NCBI RefSeq assembly: GCF_000150275.1
Contig: NW_002060951.1
Coordinates: 1,436,297-1,500,296, forward strand
From: Trichoplax adhaerens
Lineage: Eukaryota; Animalia; Placozoa
DNA length: 64,000 nucleotides
Reading direction: 5' to 3'
Positions 50,088 to 63,953 of this stretch are shown piece by piece. The notes beneath the pieces are model-generated. The model searched no databases, was not told the origin of the DNA, and saw nothing but the letters and a program-made list of their open reading frames with translations. A program made the translations under genes and the position numbers. Position 1 is the first letter of the stretch, and the number at the start of each line of letters is the position of its first letter.

Positions 50088-53000
50088 CTAATCTAAAAAG
50101 CGAGTGCATGCCTTCTTCCAGCGGCATTGAGTGCACCAAAGATGACGATTTTCCATTCCGTAGACCTTTCTACACTTTTTACCATCACCTTTGCTCTTTT
50201 TTGTTATATACGTATTTTGTTCTTTAATAAAAACACTTTCAGTTGGTGACGAAGGTTTTACGCTAGCAACATCATCTACTACTTTATCCATTGTGACCTC
50301 AACCTCTGTAAAATAAAATTCTTCTTCTCCGTTGTCTAATTTCTCAGTATTGTCTCTGAATATCATAAAAATATATTACATATTATAAGAAATGAATAAG
50401 ACCAATTAATCTTAATATGCAGTATACTGTTATAAGTTTATATTTGTCTCGAGAGGTTCTTAATATGGTAGTGATATATATTATAACTAGATAACTGTGC
50501 AAAAAAAACGATAATAAAAACTATGTTATAGAATTGGCATAAAAAAAATAGGCTTCTATATGCTAATATGTAATGCTAAATATCACATGTCCTTATACGA
50601 AACTAGACAGCAATCAAGAAATAATTAATTTACCCAAAATGGATAGTACGGATATGGCGGATAATTCCTGGATAAGTAGACAAGACTTTCCTACATTTCG
50701 GCCATGTGCAACAGTAGACGGTTTTGATAGGTGACTGAAGAGATAATATAGTAAATATAAAATGAGTTCTATAAATAGAGCGTAGGATAGATACATCATT
50801 CGCTTAAGTTTATTAAATATCTATATCATCTTACACAATCATTATACCAGATTTAGGATGTAAGCTACTCGCATAAGGCTAAAACTTACACAATTCGCAG
50901 AAATGTCTGCTTGTTCAGCTTTAGTCTGCTCTTGAACTGGTGGCAATTTAGAGCACTCAGTACGAGGCGATTCATCGCAGATTTGCCGATACGATATATC
51001 GCTATTACACAAGGGTCGAGGAGAATCTATGATGGTATGAATCATTGAAGCGATTAGTATACTAATAAACAAAAATGGCTCCAAATTGAACAATGACAGA
51101 TACGGAGGAAATCAGCTACGTCTTCTAATCTACTGTACTATGTTCTTCCGCATCGAACCGAAATGAAACATCAATGTCCTAAATTAGCATATCAATTACC
51201 GCTTTCTTCAACACCTTTGCCTAATGGAGAGTTACATAGTGTTGTCAATACCAATGCGGCTTCTTCTTCACCCATCACATTATCTTCATCTAAACTAGCT
51301 CGCCTTCAAACACAATTGCATTAGTGTTAGCTTAGGTGTAACAAGCTTGCAAACGTTCATTAATGAAGATCAATGTTATCAAGATAGCATACATACTTAA
51401 GGATTAATGTTATTGTTAGGTGACAAAGGCAGATTTACGAGTATGTAATCTAAAATATATATATATATATATATATATGGTATACAAACAATATGGAACC
51501 AGTGCTACTAGCGACTACAGTAGTACATCAATAACGTAATGTACTGTAGATGATGATGTTGTCCAGCACCTATGTGTCATAGTGTATATACAGTACTGCG
51601 AATATCACATCTAAGCGTGCATACCATAGTGCTGTTTTGAAAGCACATGAAACTTGCACCATCAAGTTGATCCGGTCGTAGTGAAATTAATTCATACTCT
51701 ATAATCATGTACTGTAAATTTGTAATGAGCTGCAAGCGACAACGTGCATTCTATAATAGTACGACACAGTATGGCAGCACCGTGTGTTTCGGTCAATGTT
51801 GACGAAGGCATCATTACTCAGGTATTGTACGAAAGGGAAAGTAAGGCGAAAGTTGATGTCTTTTAGGAATGTAGGTTAAAATGATACAGAATCCCTGAGC
51901 TTGTGCAATCATCAATTTGCATTGAAATTAATTAATTACGTTGCAAGCAACAAGATGACGCATGCTGCTTTTCCCAACGCTTATTTGACCTTGACTGCAG
52001 ATCGCCTTTTCAGAGTCAGTTTTTACTGATTACGTAGTTCATATCAGCATGTACTGAACGTGGCAGATGATAATACAGTATTATTATTATTTTACAGTAC
52101 TATTCCACAACTGCAATACTGTACATTACTGTACATACAGTACTGTACTGCAGTTTGTCATCAGTTCCAGCAGATTGCTTTTATACTGCTTACTGCTTAG
52201 TGCTTACACAATGGAAACTATGGAAACATACGGTACAGTAATGGCTTACGGTGCACTAACCGTAAACTAAATTTTCTATACATTTATGGTATTGTTTTGC
52301 GGCACTGTAGCTGGGCGGGCGTCACCGATGATACAGTACATTAATATCGCATACAGTACTATGCACTGTATGCAATACTGTACTGGAGTGGAATGGGCGC
52401 TGTACCAAATAAAACTTTCTACCGTACTACACACATGCTTCTCTCTAACCAAAGTACGTAAGCACAGTTTCAGTACACGTATTGAGTATCCTTTACCAAC
52501 ATCTGCACAAAAGGTACGAAACTGTACTTTGTCCCAAAAAAAGAAAAATTGCCGATAGAGTCTGAATTAATTATTGAAAAATCATGGAAAATGTGCTAAA
52601 ATAGTCGACCGGTAAAGTAAAAGTATAGTATTTCAATGTGTGACCTATAAGAATATTGGCAGATAAAAGAAAAAAGGGGCTACATGATATTGCGTACTGC
52701 AGTCTATTAGCAAAAAACTATTGACGCAATTTAGAAATGAACTGTTGCGAGTTGCTACTTACGCCAAACAACAAGAGAAATTACTGTCGTCTTAATTGAA
52801 CGCTGTCATGATAGCAAAATTTTAAAAGGTTGTGCACTTTTCAAGTTCGATCACTGATACAGACTATACAGTAGCGACTAGCGACGTACAGTGCTTGCTG
52901 CATTAATTATAGGTGCAGCAAGTAGTGTTAACAACCTACCTCTTCGCTGCTTTGTAGATCACTTCGCGGGATAACGAACGCTTCAAACCATTACGATTTC

Positions 53001-53412
53001 TATATTTATTTGGAGTATCGGGGACCAAATTAACCTCAGCAACATTGCGAATGATAGTTACTTCTGGCTGCTTGCATAACTGTAATCGGACTTCTCCTTC
53101 ACGAACGCTGTGATCGATCACGTTTGCGGCTACCTGAGATCCATAATAGCTAACGTATGCGATCTGACCATAACGCAAGGGGTAGCCATTATCAAGGCGC
53201 TGAAAATTGTTTCCGACGATACGGTTGTAATCTACTCGTGAATACTGGCCGTTATCGAATATCATTGTATAAGTTCCTTGACCGTAGTTTAAAGCATCAT
53301 CGCCATTAACAAGCACGCCTGGATAAAAGTAGCCGTCGTCTGCTCTTGCCGCTACACGAACACATTTTACGCTGCTATTCAACGTCCGATGTTGTAAACT
53401 TGCTAGAGACAT
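50088..53412 (-). CDS. ZNF395/ZNF704/SLC2A4RG (HDBP/GLUT4-EF) family transcription factor with C2H2 finger and C-clamp
   Basis: Exon 1 (53412-52940) has a DUF4772-like [15 protein letters not shown]. The exon at ~51304-51230 has CR1 ([15 protein letters not shown]). Exon 50735-50634 has the finger [26 protein letters not shown]. The last exon has CR2 ([10 protein letters not shown]) and the C-clamp [30 protein letters not shown]. Confidence 0.93.
51455..51478. repeat. (TA)n microsatellite
   Basis: atatatatatatatatatatatat. Confidence 0.9.
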
Positions 53413-53659
53413 TATCAATCGTAATTTTAATCTCAATTTTTATCTGTGAGAATAGTTCGAATAATTCTATACTTGACAGAAGGTATGGAAAGAAGTTGAG
53501 AGACTGCAATATCTAGAGAAAAAATCCACAGAGTAAAGAAAAGTAGCCGCGACGGTTTTTGTTCCTGCTTAATCAACAACTACAAAAACTACCGGTTTTT
53601 CTGGAAGAAGGATACAGTAGAAGGTAGAGTTTGTTTTGAGATGATCATGGAGGTGTGGT

Positions 53660-53999: not shown

Positions 54000-56530
54000 C
54001 ATGGTACTGTACATTGTGTACTGTATAGTGTACAGTACTGCAGCCATAACGAAATCAGTGGTTACTCGAGTAAAAAATCTGCTCCACGTTTTTTTTTTTT
54101 TTATCAGTTTTTTTTATTATTACAATATTAGTATATGTTTCGCTCGTTGTACTTCGTGTACTATCCATAGACTGTGTCCAGTACTTGTATTTGATACGTT
54201 TACTGTGCTACTACAGCACCATTACATCTGTATCATTCTTTACCGGAATTTCGACGGAATCAGTGCTATGCAACAGTTGATGATGCTGTCCATTTTGAAT
54301 TGTTGAACTGGAGTACACTGACTGTGTATAGTATAGCTTATACAGGTTACACGGGTCGAATTCATTATAACGCACCGTATACTGTACTGTATTATCGTTA
54401 AAAATGTTACATGGCCATTGGAGACCGTAGGTAAAAAGAAAATCATCGGCACAAAAACTTACAAACAGTACTGTACATTAAATTTAAATTTAAAACACCA
54501 ACTGCAGCGCCGGCCGGTAGTATGCCGGGCAATCGTGGACTACCGAGCCTACAAATTATTAGCTAAGTGTACAGTAGTGTAGCGTACCGTACATGCAGTA
54601 TAGTAGTTTACATTCAGGGACTGCGTGAAGAGGAGAAGAGTAATAAAAGAAGAGATTCTGGAGTGAAATAATTTTTAATTTTTATTGTGCTTTTTGTGGC
54701 ACGGCGCTCAGTAGCGCTACGTAGTGTAATAGTCCTACAGTATCGTGTAAAGAAGTGACAAACAACTCGCTAGCTTAGACAAAGAAAAATACGAACCGCC
54801 CCAGGGTATTTAATGACAAACAAGAACAGAATCATACGATACTAAGAAACATAAATACAGATAGAGTACCGTACTGTACAGTACTGTACTGTATGTACAG
54901 CAGTCCTCTGCACTCTGTAGTCTGCATTTTGCCGGGCTGCTTTACAGTAGGTGGGATCTACCGTCTGTGGGAGTTCTGCGCCGTATTCACGATAACAATA
55001 ATAATAATAATAATAATAATAAGCATATTGACATTTTTACGCGGAATAATAGGTACACCTAACCACCCGTATTTTTTAGGTTACATAGCTTTGCGTTGGC
55101 AGTTACACCACGGTACGGTAGATTTAATGCAAAGTAGTTCATCGAGTGTTAAAAAACAAGAATAAGGCTACGAATGAAAACTTTACACAGCACACGATAA
55201 GCATATTGTACAGTAGTTGCCGTACAGTGTACTGTACTGTATGTTAGGCTAGGATATGAATACATACTGTACTGTACAGTACAGTACAGCGTCAATCAAT
55301 GTATCACGTAAGTGCACATTTCATTAACTTAGCTAGTATCACGTAATCAAATTGAATTTTCATTAACCCAAAAGTTAGAGCATAAGCACTGAACTGAAGA
55401 TGCTAATTTCATGTTCAGATTGTCAGTTTGAATCACAAATAGTGCTTAATCATGGTTTAACACAAAAGCATAATCGTTTCCTTTGAAATACCTTATGTTG
55501 TACTGTACCTGTACCGCTATACGGACAGACAGATTGTACAATTGAGTACAGCAGCGCACATTGCACATGCAATATTCGTAATCGTAAGTACTGTGAGAGT
55601 TAAAATCTTAGCACTTTCGGAATGTCAGTATTACGTACCAGACAGCAAACTTGTGAAAAATACTAAAAAACGAAGGGATAGACTTTAATGTATTTTTTTT
55701 TCACTCCTTCAATTCCAGATTCGTCACCGTTTCATATTACTGTACTGGATGTACTGTATACTGTATACTACTGTACTGTACAGTATTCTGTGAGTGTACA
55801 GCACTGTACAGTATTCTACTGTAATACAAGCAGAAGCTTGGTCTAATTCAAGGCCGGACTGAGTCGCTGCTTGTCTGCATTACTGTAAGTCTGCTTTATA
55901 GTGCAAAACCTACAGCCTATTTCTGTACAGTAGATGAAAATGTGTCGATTAATTACAGTATATTTACAGTGCAGTACTGTACAGTACAGCAGAATGTATT
56001 TATTTACAGGGGCGTAACTGGGTGTTGCCACTTGTCAACAAGTCAATGTCCAAGCACAAGTAGAAATTTTGTAAAACTTACGGTTAGAAAAATAATGGAT
56101 ATTGTCAAATGTCATTTCGTTTTGATGATGGTGTATAATGTAGTACATTACCGTAGTCTGCTCATTTGGTTATTCACGGTTCTATCTAATTTTGATGCGA
56201 GAAATATTTATTTATTTCAACCGAACAAACATATTTGCTCGACCCCGACGATCTTTGCTTTTACTATACTGTATAATGTACATCTTGCTTACGAGTCAAC
56301 GACGACAAAGGACACTTGTGATATACCCTTGATATACAGACATGCTATATGTACTGTACAGTACTATACAGTATACTGTATATACATACAGTATATGTAC
56401 AGTACAGCTGTAAAGCCGTACAGTATACTGTACTGTATCGCAATTATTGAAATACTCTACTACACCGGCCATTATAATGCATCATGGTTAGTTATCTTCT
56501 AGCTTACAGGACAGTACGTACTGTATATGT
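54000..56530. repeat. Dispersed clusters of TACTG/CAGTA pentamer arrays, plus (AAT)n at 54997-55022
   Basis: Clusters at ~54003-40, 54868-900, 55205-290, 55737-822, 55960-990 and 56350-435. Confidence 0.8.
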
Positions 56531-57452: not shown

Positions 57453-58990
57453 GGCTTACCTACTTGGTATGTACAGAGCAAATTATGCTTGGTTCAAACT
57501 TTGTTCAGAGAGGATGGTGGAATCTCTTCGCTTCGTTAACTAATTGTATGGCTTCCGAAATCCGTCACGTAGCTAAAGATTGTTTAGCCTTCTAACAAGC
57601 GTAAACTGCTCCACTTACTACCTTTAGTGCGATAATAGCCCAACGACTTGTAAGTTGTTTAGTATTTACTATGTAGCTTGCTAGTACGGATAAACAAATC
57701 AATAATGAATTCTATCATTCATAACATGACATTGAAATAACGAAATAGAGAGTCTCATTACGAAATAAAGATTTTGATCATTGGTTAGCAGTATCTTTGC
57801 ATAAACATTTTCTTTCGGAAGTACATACCATGTCATTGCAATTTGAAATATTTTCATTACTTAGTGCATTCCATTATCTTATAAATGTAACTGTACTCGC
57901 TTTTCAACGCTGAAATTATTCACAGAAACTAATTCACTTAAAATACGACTCCAAAACTCATCAAACTCTTGTTAAATATGTACAAGTTGAATGATATAAA
58001 AATATTTAATTAAATTAAATAACAAGTAACTTAAACTGTCAAATTCAAGAGACTCTTAATTATGTAACTCATAATGCATCATTTTGATATAGCGATGTAA
58101 ATATACTTTAACTGTAACTACTAAATTGCAATTCCTTAGGAATAGACCATATTATCATGCTTAATATATTCAATTTCTACGTATTACAGAAATTGCTATC
58201 ATTTTAATAGATACTATAAAAACAATATCAATGGCGCAGCAATTTCGTTGTATAAAATTAGGAATATAAGTAATGAACTGATATCACTACGAGAGAGACG
58301 AGATAAATTCGTCACGATCGCACATTAATGGATAAATCATTTATCTCAAAAATACGGCAGTTAGCATACTTCATAATTGATAACTCTTTCCGTTATCTTC
58401 TCTAGAGACATTTAAAGAATTTTTAGATAATTGTGACAAACTTACTGACACAACTGGAAGCGCTAATTCTGGCTATCCAGATCCATTGGCTTTCAATGCA
58501 ATATAGTGTCTTGCATCAGCTCTAAATAAAACAGACAATAAATTAAGGGCACTCAATTCTAACCTCACTAACTTTAAATATTATACTGGAGCTATATAAA
58601 TTTTCAACGCTGCCATGCAAAAGACTAATTTTTAGAATTAAACGTACGTATTGGAGCACGTTGAAGAATCCATTCTTTAATAATAAAATAGCGTAATTAG
58701 ACTCGAAGATATTGACAAAATAACTTAGTGTACAATTCGTACGGTACTTTAGATAATTCTCTACGGCGCTAGGACGTGTAGATTTATTTATGGCTAGTAA
58801 AGTTGAGCTCCATGAAATCATTTTACTAAATATTTTATAAATCTTTACAATAATCCAACGAAACTGAAGTATGAGTAGTAAATTGATTAATTTCGATATT
58901 AACACTAAGCTATCTTTCTCATAAAGGGCTCACTCAGCTTTACAGATGGAGCAGAAGTAAGTGAAGTGCAAGTAATGCAATTTTGAAGCA
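57453..58990 (+). pseudogene. Decayed Venus-flytrap exons of a GABA-B-like class C GPCR
   Basis: Pieces read AYLLGMYRANYAWF/GWWNL..NCMASEI..AF*QA*, then DPLAFNAI*CLASALNKT..LTNFKY..I*IFNAAMQKTNF*, then GSLSFTDG..VMQF*. The conserved Trp of YDAIW is TAG (58504-6); TAA at 57593-5. Confidence 0.85.
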
Positions 58991-59126
58991 TACATAAAAT
59001 TTTTTATAAATAGTTTCTATAAGCCTATGATTAGATTAGGACATTGTAAAGGTACTGCAAATTCTATCTTAAATTATTGCTAACAATTAATACTCATAAT
59101 AACGATATTTTTATTGTTGTCTAGAT

Positions 59127-61002
59127 ATGTTTATTCCTCTTACATTATGTAAAGACATATTGACGAATTCTAGCTTTAATAAATTATATTATCATAAATT
59201 ATTCTACCATAGGTAATATCTCGTCTACTGTGTTGGTTGCAATTGGATCGTATAAGAGTAATGGTCAAGTAATAACTTTCAATCAAACTGAACCACTCAT
59301 TTGGCCAGGTTATTTATCTTACGCTATGATATAAAATCTATAAGCTGTATATCTAAAGTTTTTCAATAGCTATCTATTATAGATATAATTTCGCTTTATT
59401 TTTATCGATTAAAATCTTTATTGTATAGGAGATCAAGGTCATATTCCGATTGACGGATTCGAAACTAGATTCATAAAGAAGTATATTTGCTCTGGGCTCT
59501 TCACAGCTATGTCAATTGTATCTGCAGTTGTCATGATAATCGCCCTAATGTTCTTAGCAATTAATTTTATACATCGTAAATTAAGGTAATTACTGGATCA
59601 TTACATTAATTATATGAAGTCAATTTTTTATCGTATATCTAGAAATACGGCGCTCTATTAAATATTGTTATAGATATTGCTGATAGCTTATCGCAACTGT
59701 TTTTAATTCGTTTATGTTAGGGTTATCAAAATGTCGAGTCCAAGAATAAATAATCTCATATTAATTGGTTTTATATTATACTTTGTGGCTGTTGTTATGT
59801 TTGGAGTAGACTCTGGTACAGTTAATAAAATCTATCTACCAGCGATTTGTACTGCTCGTGTTAGTCTATTATCTATAGGATTTACACTATCATTCGGCGC
59901 TATGTTCGCTAAAACTTGGCGAGTCCATGTTATTTTTACAAACAAGACGAGTACAAAAGTGGTAATTAACTTCTTTTTATTTAATTTAACTCGAATTTAT
60001 TCGTATACTCTTGTTAAATAACATTTCATCATATTATACAGTAGTGTTTAGATCAAGATTTCGTATTCTATAATGCTAGTATAACAACGAAATAGCTTTA
60101 CGATTCGATTAAAGTTAATTTACTAAAGTACTTTGATGTAATTTAATATATTATTAAAGGTTATCAAAGACCATTCTCTTTTTGGTTTAACATTCTTGTT
60201 ATTTGTGGTTGATTTGATTATTTTGGGAGTATGGATAGCTATTGATCCGTTTACAGGTCAATATGAAAAGTTTACATCCTATGTAAGTTATTCTTATTAT
60301 TTACAGTATATTAAATTTAAATGGTCGCATAAATTTTATTGTATTTAATATAAGTAATAATTAATTATTTATTATAAATTTGTTGAATGTTTGTACTTTA
60401 TTTAAATAATAGCCATCTAAGCTTGGATCCAATATTATTATACAACCGCAAACGGTGATTTGCAGTTGTCAGTATAGTTCTATTTGGCTAGCAATTATCT
60501 ACGGATATAAATTTCTGTTACTTGTATTTGGTACATTTTTGGCATGGGAGACACGAAGTGTTTCGATTGCAGAATTAAACGATTCTCGTCATATTGGATT
60601 AGCTATCTATAACGCTGTTATATTCGCAACAATCGGTGTATTAGTGGGTCAATTGACACAAACTGGTATAGATGGAGGATATATTATTAATTCGTCATTT
60701 ATACTAATTTGTGCGACATCTAGTATGTGTCTTTTCTTTATACCGAAGGTAAGGATAACTATACTAAGCGTTAATAGAGATTTCGAGATTGCCTTGGTAC
60801 TGTAGCTATAAGCAATAAATTTTAGATTAAAATATTGGAAGAGTTAATGTAAGGTTTATTTATAATTAATCGATTACTATATTATACTGATTTGTGAACT
60901 TTTCATTTATTATGTTGTGTTTCTTAGATTCAGCTTATCAGAAGCTCGAACTATTCTATATTGTCAATGCGTAGTAGAGGATCATCTATGCAAAGACCTT
61001 AA
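59127..61002 (+). CDS. GABA-B-receptor-like 7TM region with all exons open; possible ectodomain-less receptor of ~349 aa, or the intact half of a pseudogene
   Basis: Phase-compatible exons: 59127-59148 (putative), 59213-59308, 59429-59585, 59721-59961, 60160-60282, 60413-60748 and 60928-61002. Motifs are WPG..IPID, IKMSSPRINNLILIG, FGAMFAKTWRVH, YKFLLLVFGTFLAWETR, LNDSRHIGLAIYN and FIPK. Homology is secure; functional status is not. Confidence 0.7.
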
Positions 61003-63185
61003 TCAAGTATACTACAGGCTAATGGCGGAAGCACTAAAAGACAGATGACTGGAAGTGGTTCTCATGCAGAAAGTATAGCCTAAGAATAGCGAGCAATATT
61101 AGTTTAGAGTTCAGTTAAGGAATTATAGCCTATGTTGTCAAAGTAAAATTAAGTCCTCAATTGAAAGCTATCGTGCTTTAAGCTGTGAATCCTTTAAATC
61201 CGCGTAAAGCTTTTACTTGTTTTATTATGTATAGGCAAAAGAATGTTGTCTACTTGTGGCGTATTAAAACAAATATGCTAATTCCAGAACATTTTAATTA
61301 TATGTAAACAAAGTCGATTTATATAGTTTGTAGGATTATCATGAGACTTAAAATTAAAAAATTATTGTAATGGCGCATATCATGCTTTACTTCAATTTAG
61401 TATTTAATAATACTAACTATACATGCCATTGTTTGCTATAGTTAGAGACGATGGCATCTGTTATAATAAGTAATAAGCAAAGTGTATACCGAATACTATG
61501 TTGTTATTAGATATATTTATACGCAGAGTTGGCTGAATACATAGTATATCTGACCGTAGGACGTCAGATATTAGCTTGATAATTATAATTAATCTAAAGT
61601 GTATTTTAGGTGTTGCCAAACCCAATAAAATATGTAGTGTCTATGTAATATCTATAAATGATCACATTCGATTGAAATACATGCAGTAGTATATATGAAT
61701 GGTACGGTATTAACTATAATATCGAAGTTATAAGATACCATGCATTAAAAAAGCTGTAGAGAATATTAATACAAAGACTGAAACATCAGTTAATTCTTCA
61801 TTGTGACACATGTATATCATTTGTTTAACTTTAATATTTTTGCCCTTGTTTTATGTACCAGATGTTTTACGACAAGAAACTTTACGATTAAAGCAATCGC
61901 TTTTTCTCAATATAGGATTGCTTACTCATATTGATGCTATTCAAAAAAGTAATCCTTTATAAGGTTATTAATTCGTTACGAGAATAAATTAATATTATGG
62001 TAGTTAAATATATTAAATATTGATTACTTATATTCACTGTTGAAAACTCAACTGGCCTTAAATCAAGGTTTGCAGATTAGCATAGTAATATCGTGGCTAA
62101 TTACGTAACTGTATTTCGTAGCCATAATAACATTTCCGTAGTTATTTTACTACTAATGGTGAATAACGTCTACACGTTAAAGCTACGGTACAATAATTTT
62201 ATTTCTACAAATTACTATGAGAAGAAAACATCTACATAAAATGCTATTTTATGCTATAGATAAAAGGTGCTGAATTGATATCTTTTAGGATTCAATCTCT
62301 TTTAAAATTTAAGATTTAATATCTTTCATCCAAACAAACAACTTATGCAGTTAGTCTTGCTGCAATTCTCAGTATATTACAAATGTTGTTCAACCTTTTA
62401 ATTCGCTTTCCGCCGAGGTTATGCATCAATTCAATTACTAGGTTAAATTGCAGCATTCACGAATAATCAAGTCATCATAAAGGTTTTCAATATTGATTTC
62501 TACTTCCATTTTAATCAAAATTGAATCTTAAATATACGGTAGTCTTTAGTTGATATGACAATTGTGACATGGTACGTACCTTGATTACTTTATTTTTATT
62601 TCCATTGTTTCATACAAATCAAGTTATAGTAATTGAAGTCCAAGCATAGAAATAAAAATCATCAGTTTCGTCGAATAACTGAAGCAAAATTTTACAAAGC
62701 AGAATCATAAATTCGCTCCCTTAGTATCTAAAAGACAATAATAAGCGTAATTAATTTTACTGACGTCATTTGTAATCAATTTAAAATTTACTAACAGAAA
62801 TATACTAAGTTATAAGAAATATTGACTTTTCATAGTCAAAACTAGACATTGACATTTCGATTTTATATTATTTATACATACTGACAGATTAAACAATTAA
62901 CCCGTGGGTATCGCTACAGATGAAGTTGAGCTGTTCTCAATTATGCAAAACTGTCAACAAATTGAAATCATATTCAATCTTTTTCCAGTATTATCTACTT
63001 ATAGTAAATACTTGTATGATTCAATCTTTGCATCAATTTACACTTTGTATTTTATTACACTGCACATTGTTATTACCAAGGTATAAATAAAAGCAACATC
63101 AGTAATACGAATTCATTAATCGTTTTTCGAACTGTCGTAATTTTGATCATTTACGTGATATTAACGACATCAAGAAGTTAAGAAT

Positions 63186-63953
63186 ATGATTAAGAAAGAC
63201 CTTTACTCAACTTCAACACTGTGTTTCTGTTATTTGGCGTTATGTATTCTTCCAGTTTACTCGTCTGGTACCAAGACGCCGTTACATTTAGGAGGTACAT
63301 ATCCAGCAAGTTACGTCTACCTTAAAAGTTCGATGAAGATGATGAAAAATGTAGCAGATATGGCAATACGTGATATTAATGCGAGAAGCGATGTTCTCGA
63401 GCAGTATGAACTCAAGCTAAAGTTATTAGATGACGGGGTAAGCACTTTGCGTTAACGGTTAATCGTGCTCATGTGTCTTAAAGTTTCAATTTTTTCTATA
63501 ATATTAATTCTTAAATACGGCAACGGTTGTGGACATTACATATTTTCTCCTAGTAGTATAACAAAATTATTGCTGGAAAAGTCTTTGTCAATGAAGTTCT
63601 ACACGGTCCACAACTTATGGCTTTACTGGGACCTTATACGTCTCATTCGTCTTCAGTGGTTGCTACTATAGCTCGTTACTGGAATCTTATTCAGGTTTTG
63701 ATGATAGTTTATTATTACTTGTAATTTAGACTGATTTCCTTTGATATCTCTAGTTATTTTTCTTATTTTCTGATGCTATAGCTGTCAGCTGGGGCCACAT
63801 CAACACAATTCAGCAATCGAGAGGAATTTCCCTACTTCTATAGTAGCCTATTGACGGATATTACATATAACTCTGTTCGTGTAGGATTAGTGAAAAGATT
63901 TGGATGGAAAAGAGTAGCTATCTTGTATCATAGCGATGTATTATTTGACAATG
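63186..63953 (+). CDS. GABA-B-receptor-like class C GPCR, 5' part (continues past the window)
   Basis: Signal peptide, then ADMAIRDINARSDVLEQYELKL (exon 63186-63437). Exon 63557-63694 has LLGPYTS..ARYWNLIQ. Exon 63782-63953 has LSAGATSTQFSNREEFPYF..FGWKRVAIL. Confidence 0.9.

Follow-up and report, generated by a model that had tools for sequence, protein, structure and literature searches.

Unprocessed pseudogenes that are homogenised by conversion with a functional tandem neighbour are known from the pairs CYP21A1P/CYP21A2 and GBAP1/GBA1. Such conversion has also been reported in chemoreceptor GPCR clusters, e.g. V1R (PMC2644715). In Trichoplax adhaerens, 37 GABA-B-like receptors have been reported (PMC10133484).

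The locus described here, gene A, lies in a 64-kb stretch of T. adhaerens DNA (hereafter the window). Together with its paralog B it resembles CYP21A1P/CYP21A2 and GBAP1/GBA1 in being a same-orientation tandem pair in which one partner carries disabling lesions, and in having a short, near-identical tract, exons and introns alike, between old, diverged flanks. It differs from them in belonging to a placozoan GABA-B-like class C cluster, in the 5′ truncation of the pseudogene and in a direction of transfer that can be given only as probable. With the orphan class C receptor GPR156, gene A shares a GABA-B-type 7TM domain without a ligand-binding Venus flytrap (VFT). However, GPR156 is an old, conserved and expressed gene with its own start, whereas gene A has VFT relics upstream, a start that is no more than a candidate and an intact frame that appears borrowed. 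Like the GABA-B subunits GB1 and GB2 and the Trichoplax GABA-B-like receptors, gene A has a 7TM domain of the 7tm_3 fold, and the VFT is joined directly to TM1 without a cysteine-rich linker. Unlike them, and unlike any full-length class C receptor, it has no intact or usable VFT, no start codon and no signal peptide. We consider it probable that gene A is a 5′-truncated pseudogene whose TM2-TM7 part was patched by recent conversion with its neighbour B. A new headless receptor is the less likely reading; the locus is most probably a pseudogene of the ordinary kind.

Gene A, its paralogs and the decayed Venus flytrap

Gene A is a copy of a GABA-B-like class C receptor, and its exons 6-14 (e6-e14) were located at 57454-61083 on the forward strand by homology to paralog B; all features below are on the same strand. 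It stands at the upstream edge of a small tandem group, followed by B and, ∼20 kb further on, by C. Paralog B, 8.5 kb downstream of A on the same strand, is intact, and its exons join to an uninterrupted frame of 775 codons (count only). All 14 exons of paralog C are open, and both B and C have the full architecture of VFT and 7TM. No further decayed copies were found between B and C or after C (L003, L004) by searches with the exon translations of B and C and by blastn. A locus at C1408:3729652, considered as a short 7tm_3 locus, was rejected, since it is a normal mGluR-like gene of two exons with a VFT ORF of 587 aa upstream.

As in other unprocessed pseudogenes, exons 6-14 of gene A are collinear with those of B, the splice positions are identical, the introns are in place and lesions are present. 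Exons e6-e8 and e14 carry the disabling lesions, and e1-e5 have been lost. Gene A would thus derive from a GABA-B-like class C receptor gene of 14 exons as an unprocessed, 5′-truncated pseudogene, and the locus would make no working receptor at present.

The sequence-only reading had described three VFT exons with stops and frameshifts, and this was confirmed. The e6 relic (57454-57649) is 69% identical to exon 6 of B (L001 5563-5763) in blastn/tblastn comparison; it lacks 5 nt after 57493 and has TAA codons at 57593-57595 and 57602-57604, with both acceptor and donor still present. The e7 relic (58408-58643) is 75% identical to exon 7 of B (L001 5961-6197) and has TAG at 58504-58506 (TGG in B), TAA at 58597-58599 (GAA in B) and a 1-nt deletion after 58628, which puts two further stops in frame. 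The e8 relic (58927-58987), aligned to exon 8 of B (L001 6438-6498), has TGA at 58984-58986 (CGA in B), and its donor GT is changed to GC at 58988-58989. The relics thus carry five primary and two secondary stops, two frameshifts and one lost donor. Exons 1-5 do not occur anywhere in the 64-kb window, where searches with the exon translations of B (to E 20, word size 2) gave random matches only. With them gene A lost its start codon, its signal peptide and about half of its VFT. The loss of the ectodomain claimed earlier is therefore real. The relic pieces gave no match in a Pfam search, in which e3 and e7 of B did match, e7 to ANF_receptor.

In simulation ∼3.9 stops are expected in the relics, and five are seen. 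The A branch has accumulated 70 changes vs 40 on the B branch (1.75-fold faster), and the changes of A are spread evenly across codon positions (46:24 vs 17:23 in B; Fisher p 0.027). The A-B synonymous distance (dS) of the relics is 0.81.

The open 7TM frame and the tract shared with B

Six exons, from 59213-59308 to 60928-61002, have AG/GT borders and compatible phases and encode the stalk and TM1-7 without a stop, as had been noted from the sequence. Together with a tiny exon at 59125-59148 they give 349 codons with one terminal stop (length and stops counted by script), so that a complete TM1-7 frame is open in gene A. Exon-by-exon profile search with Pfam 7tm_3 (PF00003; cut-off 33.5 bits, the gathering score) placed e11 (59721-59961, TM2-TM3) at 68.1 bits and e13 (60413-60748, TM5-TM7) at 76.5 bits, both above the cut-off, which identifies a class C 7TM domain. 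Exon 12 (60160-60282, TM4) scored 19.1 bits at the expected profile positions. Among solved relatives, e13 was closest to GABA-B2 (E 6e-26), followed by GABA-B1 (E 1e-23 to 1e-17), and much further from GPR156 (E 3e-9). No match to the NCD3G cysteine-rich linker was found in e9 or e10, and the frame leads directly into TM1. This absence, with the GABA-B subunits as closest relatives, places gene A in the GABA-B-like subfamily.

The TM2-TM7 block looks pristine because over 1.28 kb, in exons and introns alike, gene A is almost the same as its intact neighbour B. This tract (59694-60971; L001 7176-8453 in B) is 1278 nt long with nine mismatches and no indels (99.3% identity). It comprises the last 27 nt of intron 10, e11 (98.8% identical to B), intron 11, e12 (identical to B), intron 12, e13, intron 13 and the first 44 nt of e14. 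Differences are as frequent in exons (4/744, three of the four nonsynonymous) as in introns (5/534; Fisher p 0.50). The edges are abrupt, identity falling to 55-80% on both sides, and the dS of e11-e13 is 0.006 vs 0.8-0.9 outside the tract. When the whole 105.6-Mb genome was compared, the block was common to A and B only. Equal identity of exons and introns, sharp borders, old flanks and a same-strand paralog 8.5 kb downstream are the marks of gene conversion, and as judged from these alignments the tract is a recent one. Either unequal exchange or gene conversion between non-allelic copies would have produced the identity of the block. Such an event would be very recent, given 0.7% divergence in the tract vs a synonymous distance of ∼0.8 elsewhere in the pair. 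The transfer probably went from B to A; the four exonic differences (one derived in A, one derived in B, two ambiguous) do not by themselves fix the direction.

Since the tract is a recent conversion with introns as alike as exons, its open frame would have no bearing on constraint. An unselected tract with ∼2-6 substitutions since conversion stays stop-free with P 0.73-0.90 in simulation, and the omega of 0.9 for e11-e13 comes from four changes and has no power. The sequence-only reading had taken the open frame as a sign of selection on the 7TM; this is unsupported, as ∼700 of the ∼950 stop-free nt belong to the tract shared with B. The comparison it proposed, exon-by-exon dN/dS and lesion density against the tandem paralog, bears out the decay of the VFT and finds e9-e10 free of lesions; it says nothing on constraint in TM2-TM7, where conversion leaves a dS of 0.006. 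In general, an intact ORF beside a close paralog is no proof of selection unless the introns are compared too.

Stalk, first transmembrane segment, start and tail

Two exons outside the tract bear on whether gene A may be a living, headless GABA-B-like receptor with a new promoter and a start exon in the old intron 8, which we regard as unlikely. In that case it would be a 7TM subunit, either constitutive or a partner, that conversion with B merely refreshed. In favour of this reading is a frame that is complete over TM1-7 and has canonical splice sites, but most of this frame is the uninformative tract. The two exons are e9 (59213-59308, VFT lobe end and stalk; 80% identical to B) and e10 (59429-59585, linker and TM1; 66% identical to B, with an in-frame 6-nt indel). 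Both are old sequence (dS 0.88 between A and B), and their 253 nt have no stop and no frameshift, with all four splice sites intact. Unlike the VFT relics they are not accelerated in A: 26 changes on the A branch vs 30 on the B branch differ from the 70:40 of the relics (Fisher p 0.026-0.046; bootstrap P 0.016-0.020), in a test of only 56 substitutions with an outgroup at saturated synonymous distance. The A-branch ratio of synonymous to nonsynonymous changes, 9:14 vs a neutral expectation of ∼1:3.4, also favours a living receptor, with the same few substitutions and saturated outgroup. Had e9-e10 drifted as long as the relics, they would be stop-free by chance with P 0.16-0.25 (simulation) and wholly lesion-free with a probability of ∼0.01-0.1 (a rough estimate, multiplied out by hand from stops, frameshifts and splice sites). 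Such drift without any lesion is unlikely. That e9-e10 are lesion-free and unaccelerated counts against the pseudogene and leaves some room, at low probability, for a headless receptor. We take the signal for selection as weak. Older, patchy conversion could also have kept e9-e10 intact, since intron 9 and the 3′ flank retain more similarity to B than introns 7-8 do.

A headless receptor would need a start of its own, and the start exon proposed earlier, the tiny ATG exon at 59125-59148 within the ancestral intron 8, is no better than chance, even though its in-frame join to the 349 codons holds. When the 225 nt upstream were shuffled, one or more in-phase ATG...GT candidates arose in 56% of cases. 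Another such candidate, the one used by the public model of the locus, is present in gene A at 59027-59045, and the intact paralogs B and C carry several in the same intron. The tail also argues against a working receptor. Exon 14 (60928-61083) is shortened, as described earlier, by a premature TAA at 61000-61002 where B has CAA, the frame staying open up to 61081-61083, where the ancestral stop aligns with the stop of B. This reads as a plain CAA to TAA nonsense mutation, 29 nt beyond the tract edge. A further point against is that a word search of 5.8 billion proteins for relatives of 177-563 aa returned only the public model of the locus itself (TRIADDRAFT_58937) and one distant match of 36% identity. 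In favour stands vertebrate GPR156, found among the solved relatives of e13, as a VFT-less GABA-B relative that works. It is rather unlikely that gene A is transcribed as a VFT-less 7TM subunit that arose independently of GPR156, with selection on the stalk and TM1 and with TM2-7 matched to B by recurrent conversion. If so, recurrent conversion would suit a partner subunit that still needs to dimerise with B, and a GABA-B-type subunit without a VFT would have originated independently in a neuron-less animal.

Staged decay is less likely still. By this account the VFT died first, the 7TM part served for a while as a headless or partner subunit and then died, the tail nonsense mutation being its first lesion, and conversion later overwrote a part of it. 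The unequal A-branch excess of the VFT relics and e9-e10 and the premature stop just beyond the tract are consistent with this order. The account shares the weak statistics of a living receptor, however, a start codon or promoter is indicated at no time, and the pattern is more simply accounted for by patchy conversions of older date. An assembly artefact, in which reads of B or of its other allele were misplaced into A, is very improbable: 0.7% divergence is of the size of allelic variation and small duplicate contigs with identical match statistics occur elsewhere (e.g. C1030 vs C1410, C1231 vs C1412), but both tract junctions lie in continuous, N-free sequence, A-specific homologous sequence flanks the tract in register on both sides, and the nine differences with unique flanks are consistent with two real copies.

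The public protein model of the locus

The locus of gene A is not new to databases, as it is already there as TRIADDRAFT_58937 (XP_002114933.1, UniProt B3S433), a 7TM-only hypothetical protein of 322 aa. A search of the contigs with this protein for loci encoding it elsewhere gave no match, and the gene id was not mentioned in the literature searched or in the supplement of PMC10133484. The public model is 100% identical to our homology model of gene A over exon 13. It differs in starting in the e8 relic, with a donor at 59045, in missing the 3′ third of e11 (part of TM3) and in a non-homologous last exon at 61511-61576. Such features are typical of an ab initio prediction made where there is no gene. 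The Trichoplax genome is noted for a record number of GABA-B-like receptors, and it is a caution for such counts that TRIADDRAFT_58937, a public 7TM-only 'family 3 GPCR' model, most likely represents a truncated pseudogene.

The tandem receptor copies

The genome searched comprised 105.6 Mb in 1414 contigs, with the window at C1406:1436297-1500296. Trichoplax adhaerens is reported to possess 37 receptors of the GABA-B-like type, above every other animal analysed in that study (PMC10133484). Gene A, the receptor copy with broken Venus-flytrap (VFT) exons, is collinear with exons 6-14 only of its intact tandem paralog, gene B. B starts with an ATG at 63186 and joins as 14 exons in an uninterrupted 775-codon frame, with Pfam ANF_receptor matches in exons 3 and 7. 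A third copy, gene C, about 20 kb beyond B, has all 14 exons open. Neither tblastn (E 0.01) nor blastn detected B- or C-like receptor exons in 10 kb lying between these two genes (C1406:1507201-1517000) or in 10 kb past C (C1406:1526901-1536800).

Another headless candidate (C1408:3725500-3732500), with a 7tm_3 match and only a 373-aa open frame, was rejected as a normal mGluR-like gene, in which a 587-aa VFT+NCD3G ORF is followed by one intron and the 7TM ORF. The small contigs C1030 and C1231 had 7tm_3 matches whose lengths and stop patterns equal those of the large-scaffold loci C1410:4992901-4994400 and C1412:8318027-8318455, respectively; haplotype copies left unmerged by the assembly are the probable explanation.

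Decayed VFT exons and the 5′ flank

The three VFT relics of A lie on the forward strand. In the exon 6 relic (57454-57649), comparison with B revealed a deletion of 5 nt along with two TAA codons in frame. In the exon 7 relic (58408-58643), TGG has become TAG, GAA has become TAA, and deletion of 1 nt puts two further stops in frame; the exon 8 relic (58927-58987) carries CGA to TGA and a donor change from GT to GC. The stops and frameshifts reported by the sequence-only reading were thus confirmed as five primary stops, two deletions and two secondary stops. Sequencing error was ruled out as their source because the independent lesions are too many. Exons 1-5 of B had no counterpart in the whole 64-kb window when searched down to E 20, so A also lacks a start codon and signal peptide.

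The 5′ flank at about 54800-56450 is crowded with a short dispersed palindromic repeat (54841-54900, 55204-55290, 55738-55823 and 56350-56438). This repeat is about 90 nt long, has a TACTGTACAGTA-like core and is scattered over many contigs in either orientation, with at least 100 copies. Upstream of the receptor relics, where the sequence is richer in GC, there is a 166-aa open frame (52936-53436, reverse strand).

The near-identical tract and the 7TM frame

Divergence between A and B was uneven along the gene. Identity was 69%, 75% and 56% in the relics of exons 6, 7 and 8, 80% in exon 9 and 66% in exon 10. The 1278-nt tract at 59694-60971 was 99.3% identical, with 9 mismatches and no indel, and the 48 nt directly past it were about 67% identical (16 differences). 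The tract contains the end of intron 10, exons 11-13 with introns 11-13, and 44 nt of exon 14. Its introns were as alike as its exons (5 differences in 534 nt vs 4 in 744 nt; Fisher p 0.50), and introns 6-9 beyond it could be aligned to B barely or not at all. By the Nei-Gojobori method, A-B dS was 0.006 for exons 11-13, 0.81 for the VFT relics and 0.88 for exons 9-10. No further copy of the block was found in the 105.6-Mb genome, the next best match being C (80%, exons only). This pattern is the signature of tandem paralogs, here 8.5 kb apart, that recently underwent non-allelic gene conversion or an equivalent unequal exchange.

Of the four exon differences in the tract, three were nonsynonymous. 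A carries the derived state at one of the four and B at another, the remaining two being ambiguous, and the conversion direction cannot be read from them. Against C, the tract lineage had 39 changes at the first codon position, 26 at the second and 88 at the third (omega 0.15), a strong third-position bias that fits a functional donor. We consider it probable that A is a 5′-truncated unprocessed pseudogene in which gene conversion with the working neighbour B has lately replaced the TM2-TM7 block. A converted tandem pseudogene is a well-known kind of thing.

The exon model of A was rebuilt from splice sites, and the joined frame was only counted by script (length, stops). AG/GT borders were present at exons 9 (59213-59308) and 10 (59429-59585), both phase compatible, and at exons 11 (59721-59961), 12 (60160-60282) and 13 (60413-60748), which match Pfam 7tm_3 profile positions 37-106, 113-146 and 151-251. 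Exon 14 (60928-61002), also AG/GT bounded, ends at a premature TAA. Together with a tiny upstream exon, these forward-strand exons gave compatible phases and 349 codons with one terminal stop, in agreement with the earlier claim of stop-free 7TM exons and an ORF of about 349 aa. The closest solved relatives of exon 13 were GABA-B2 (E 6e-26) and GABA-B1; GPR156 was more distant.

The open frame had also been taken as a sign of selection on the 7TM, and this claim was not upheld. The B-like tract accounts for about 700 of some 950 stop-free coding nt, and in simulation an unselected tract with 2-6 substitutions on A since the event stayed stop-free with P 0.73-0.90. Given the VFT relics' 70 changes on the A branch, the simulation predicted 3.9 stops; five primary stops were observed, so the model is calibrated. 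That the TM2-TM7 frame is intact therefore does not count as evidence of selection on A. It is unlikely that A is a living headless receptor. Introns should be compared with the paralog before an intact ORF is taken as selection.

Exons 9-10, the gene ends and the public model

Evidence for the sequence-only reading came from the old exons 9 and 10 (253 nt, outside the tract), which had no stop or frameshift and kept 4 of 4 splice sites. Stop-freeness alone had P 0.16-0.25 under neutrality; stops, frameshifts and splice sites together gave a rough hand product of 0.01-0.1, which varies with the assumed drift time. With C as outgroup, A-branch to B-branch changes were 70:40 in the VFT relics and 26:30 in exons 9-10 (Fisher p 0.046, or 0.026 without the ambiguous part of exon 6; bootstrap P for equal excess about 0.02). 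Distance-based branch lengths were 0.25 (A) and 0.13 (B) in the relics and 0.16 and 0.20 in exons 9-10, and A-branch synonymous to nonsynonymous changes were 20:47 and 9:14. Decay has thus gone less far in exons 9-10 than in the VFT relics.

The stalk and TM1 may have stayed under constraint for longer, older and patchy conversions between A and B may have taken place, or the lesser decay may be chance in 56 substitutions polarised by a saturated outgroup. In favour of patchy conversions, residual similarity per base in intron 9 and the 3′ flank was 2-3 times that of introns 7-8, and a 35-nt island of perfect identity (61020-61054) in a tail otherwise 67-86% identical suggests such an older or patchy history. 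That the 7TM of A outlasted its VFT for a time and is dead now seems quite improbable, and an assembly artefact is a hardly credible source of the near-identical block.

The tiny start exon proposed earlier (59125-59148, forward strand, 24 nt, AG/GT borders) is present, carries an ATG and is in phase. It lies within ancestral intron 8, just outside the region in which blastn again finds similarity to B (from 59175). It is real but uninformative: when the 225 nt preceding exon 9 were shuffled, 56% of the shuffles gave at least one ATG stop-free to an in-phase GT, and 14% did so with a GTAA donor. A second candidate in A (59027-59045) likewise has a GTAAAG donor, and the same intron holds two candidates in B and seven in C. 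An AG upstream of a first exon carries no meaning. The shortened C-tail was borne out by comparison with B: the TAA at 61000, 29 nt past the tract edge, is CAA in B, and the ancestral stop of A (61081-61083) aligns with that of B. The change is a plain nonsense mutation and costs the tail 27 codons.

TRIADDRAFT_58937 (XP_002114933.1, B3S433; 322 aa; window 58940-61576) is a 7TM-only public model of this locus. Its identifier was found neither in the literature searched nor in the PMC10133484 supplement, and a word search with the model as query returned, among proteins of 177-563 aa, nothing beyond the model and a single distant match (36% identity). It is 100% identical to A in exon 13. Its start is out of frame in the exon 8 relic (donor 59045), the 3′ third of exon 11 (part of TM3) is missing, and a non-homologous terminal exon (61511-61576) replaces exon 14. 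Such departures from the homology-based exons are typical of an ab initio call.
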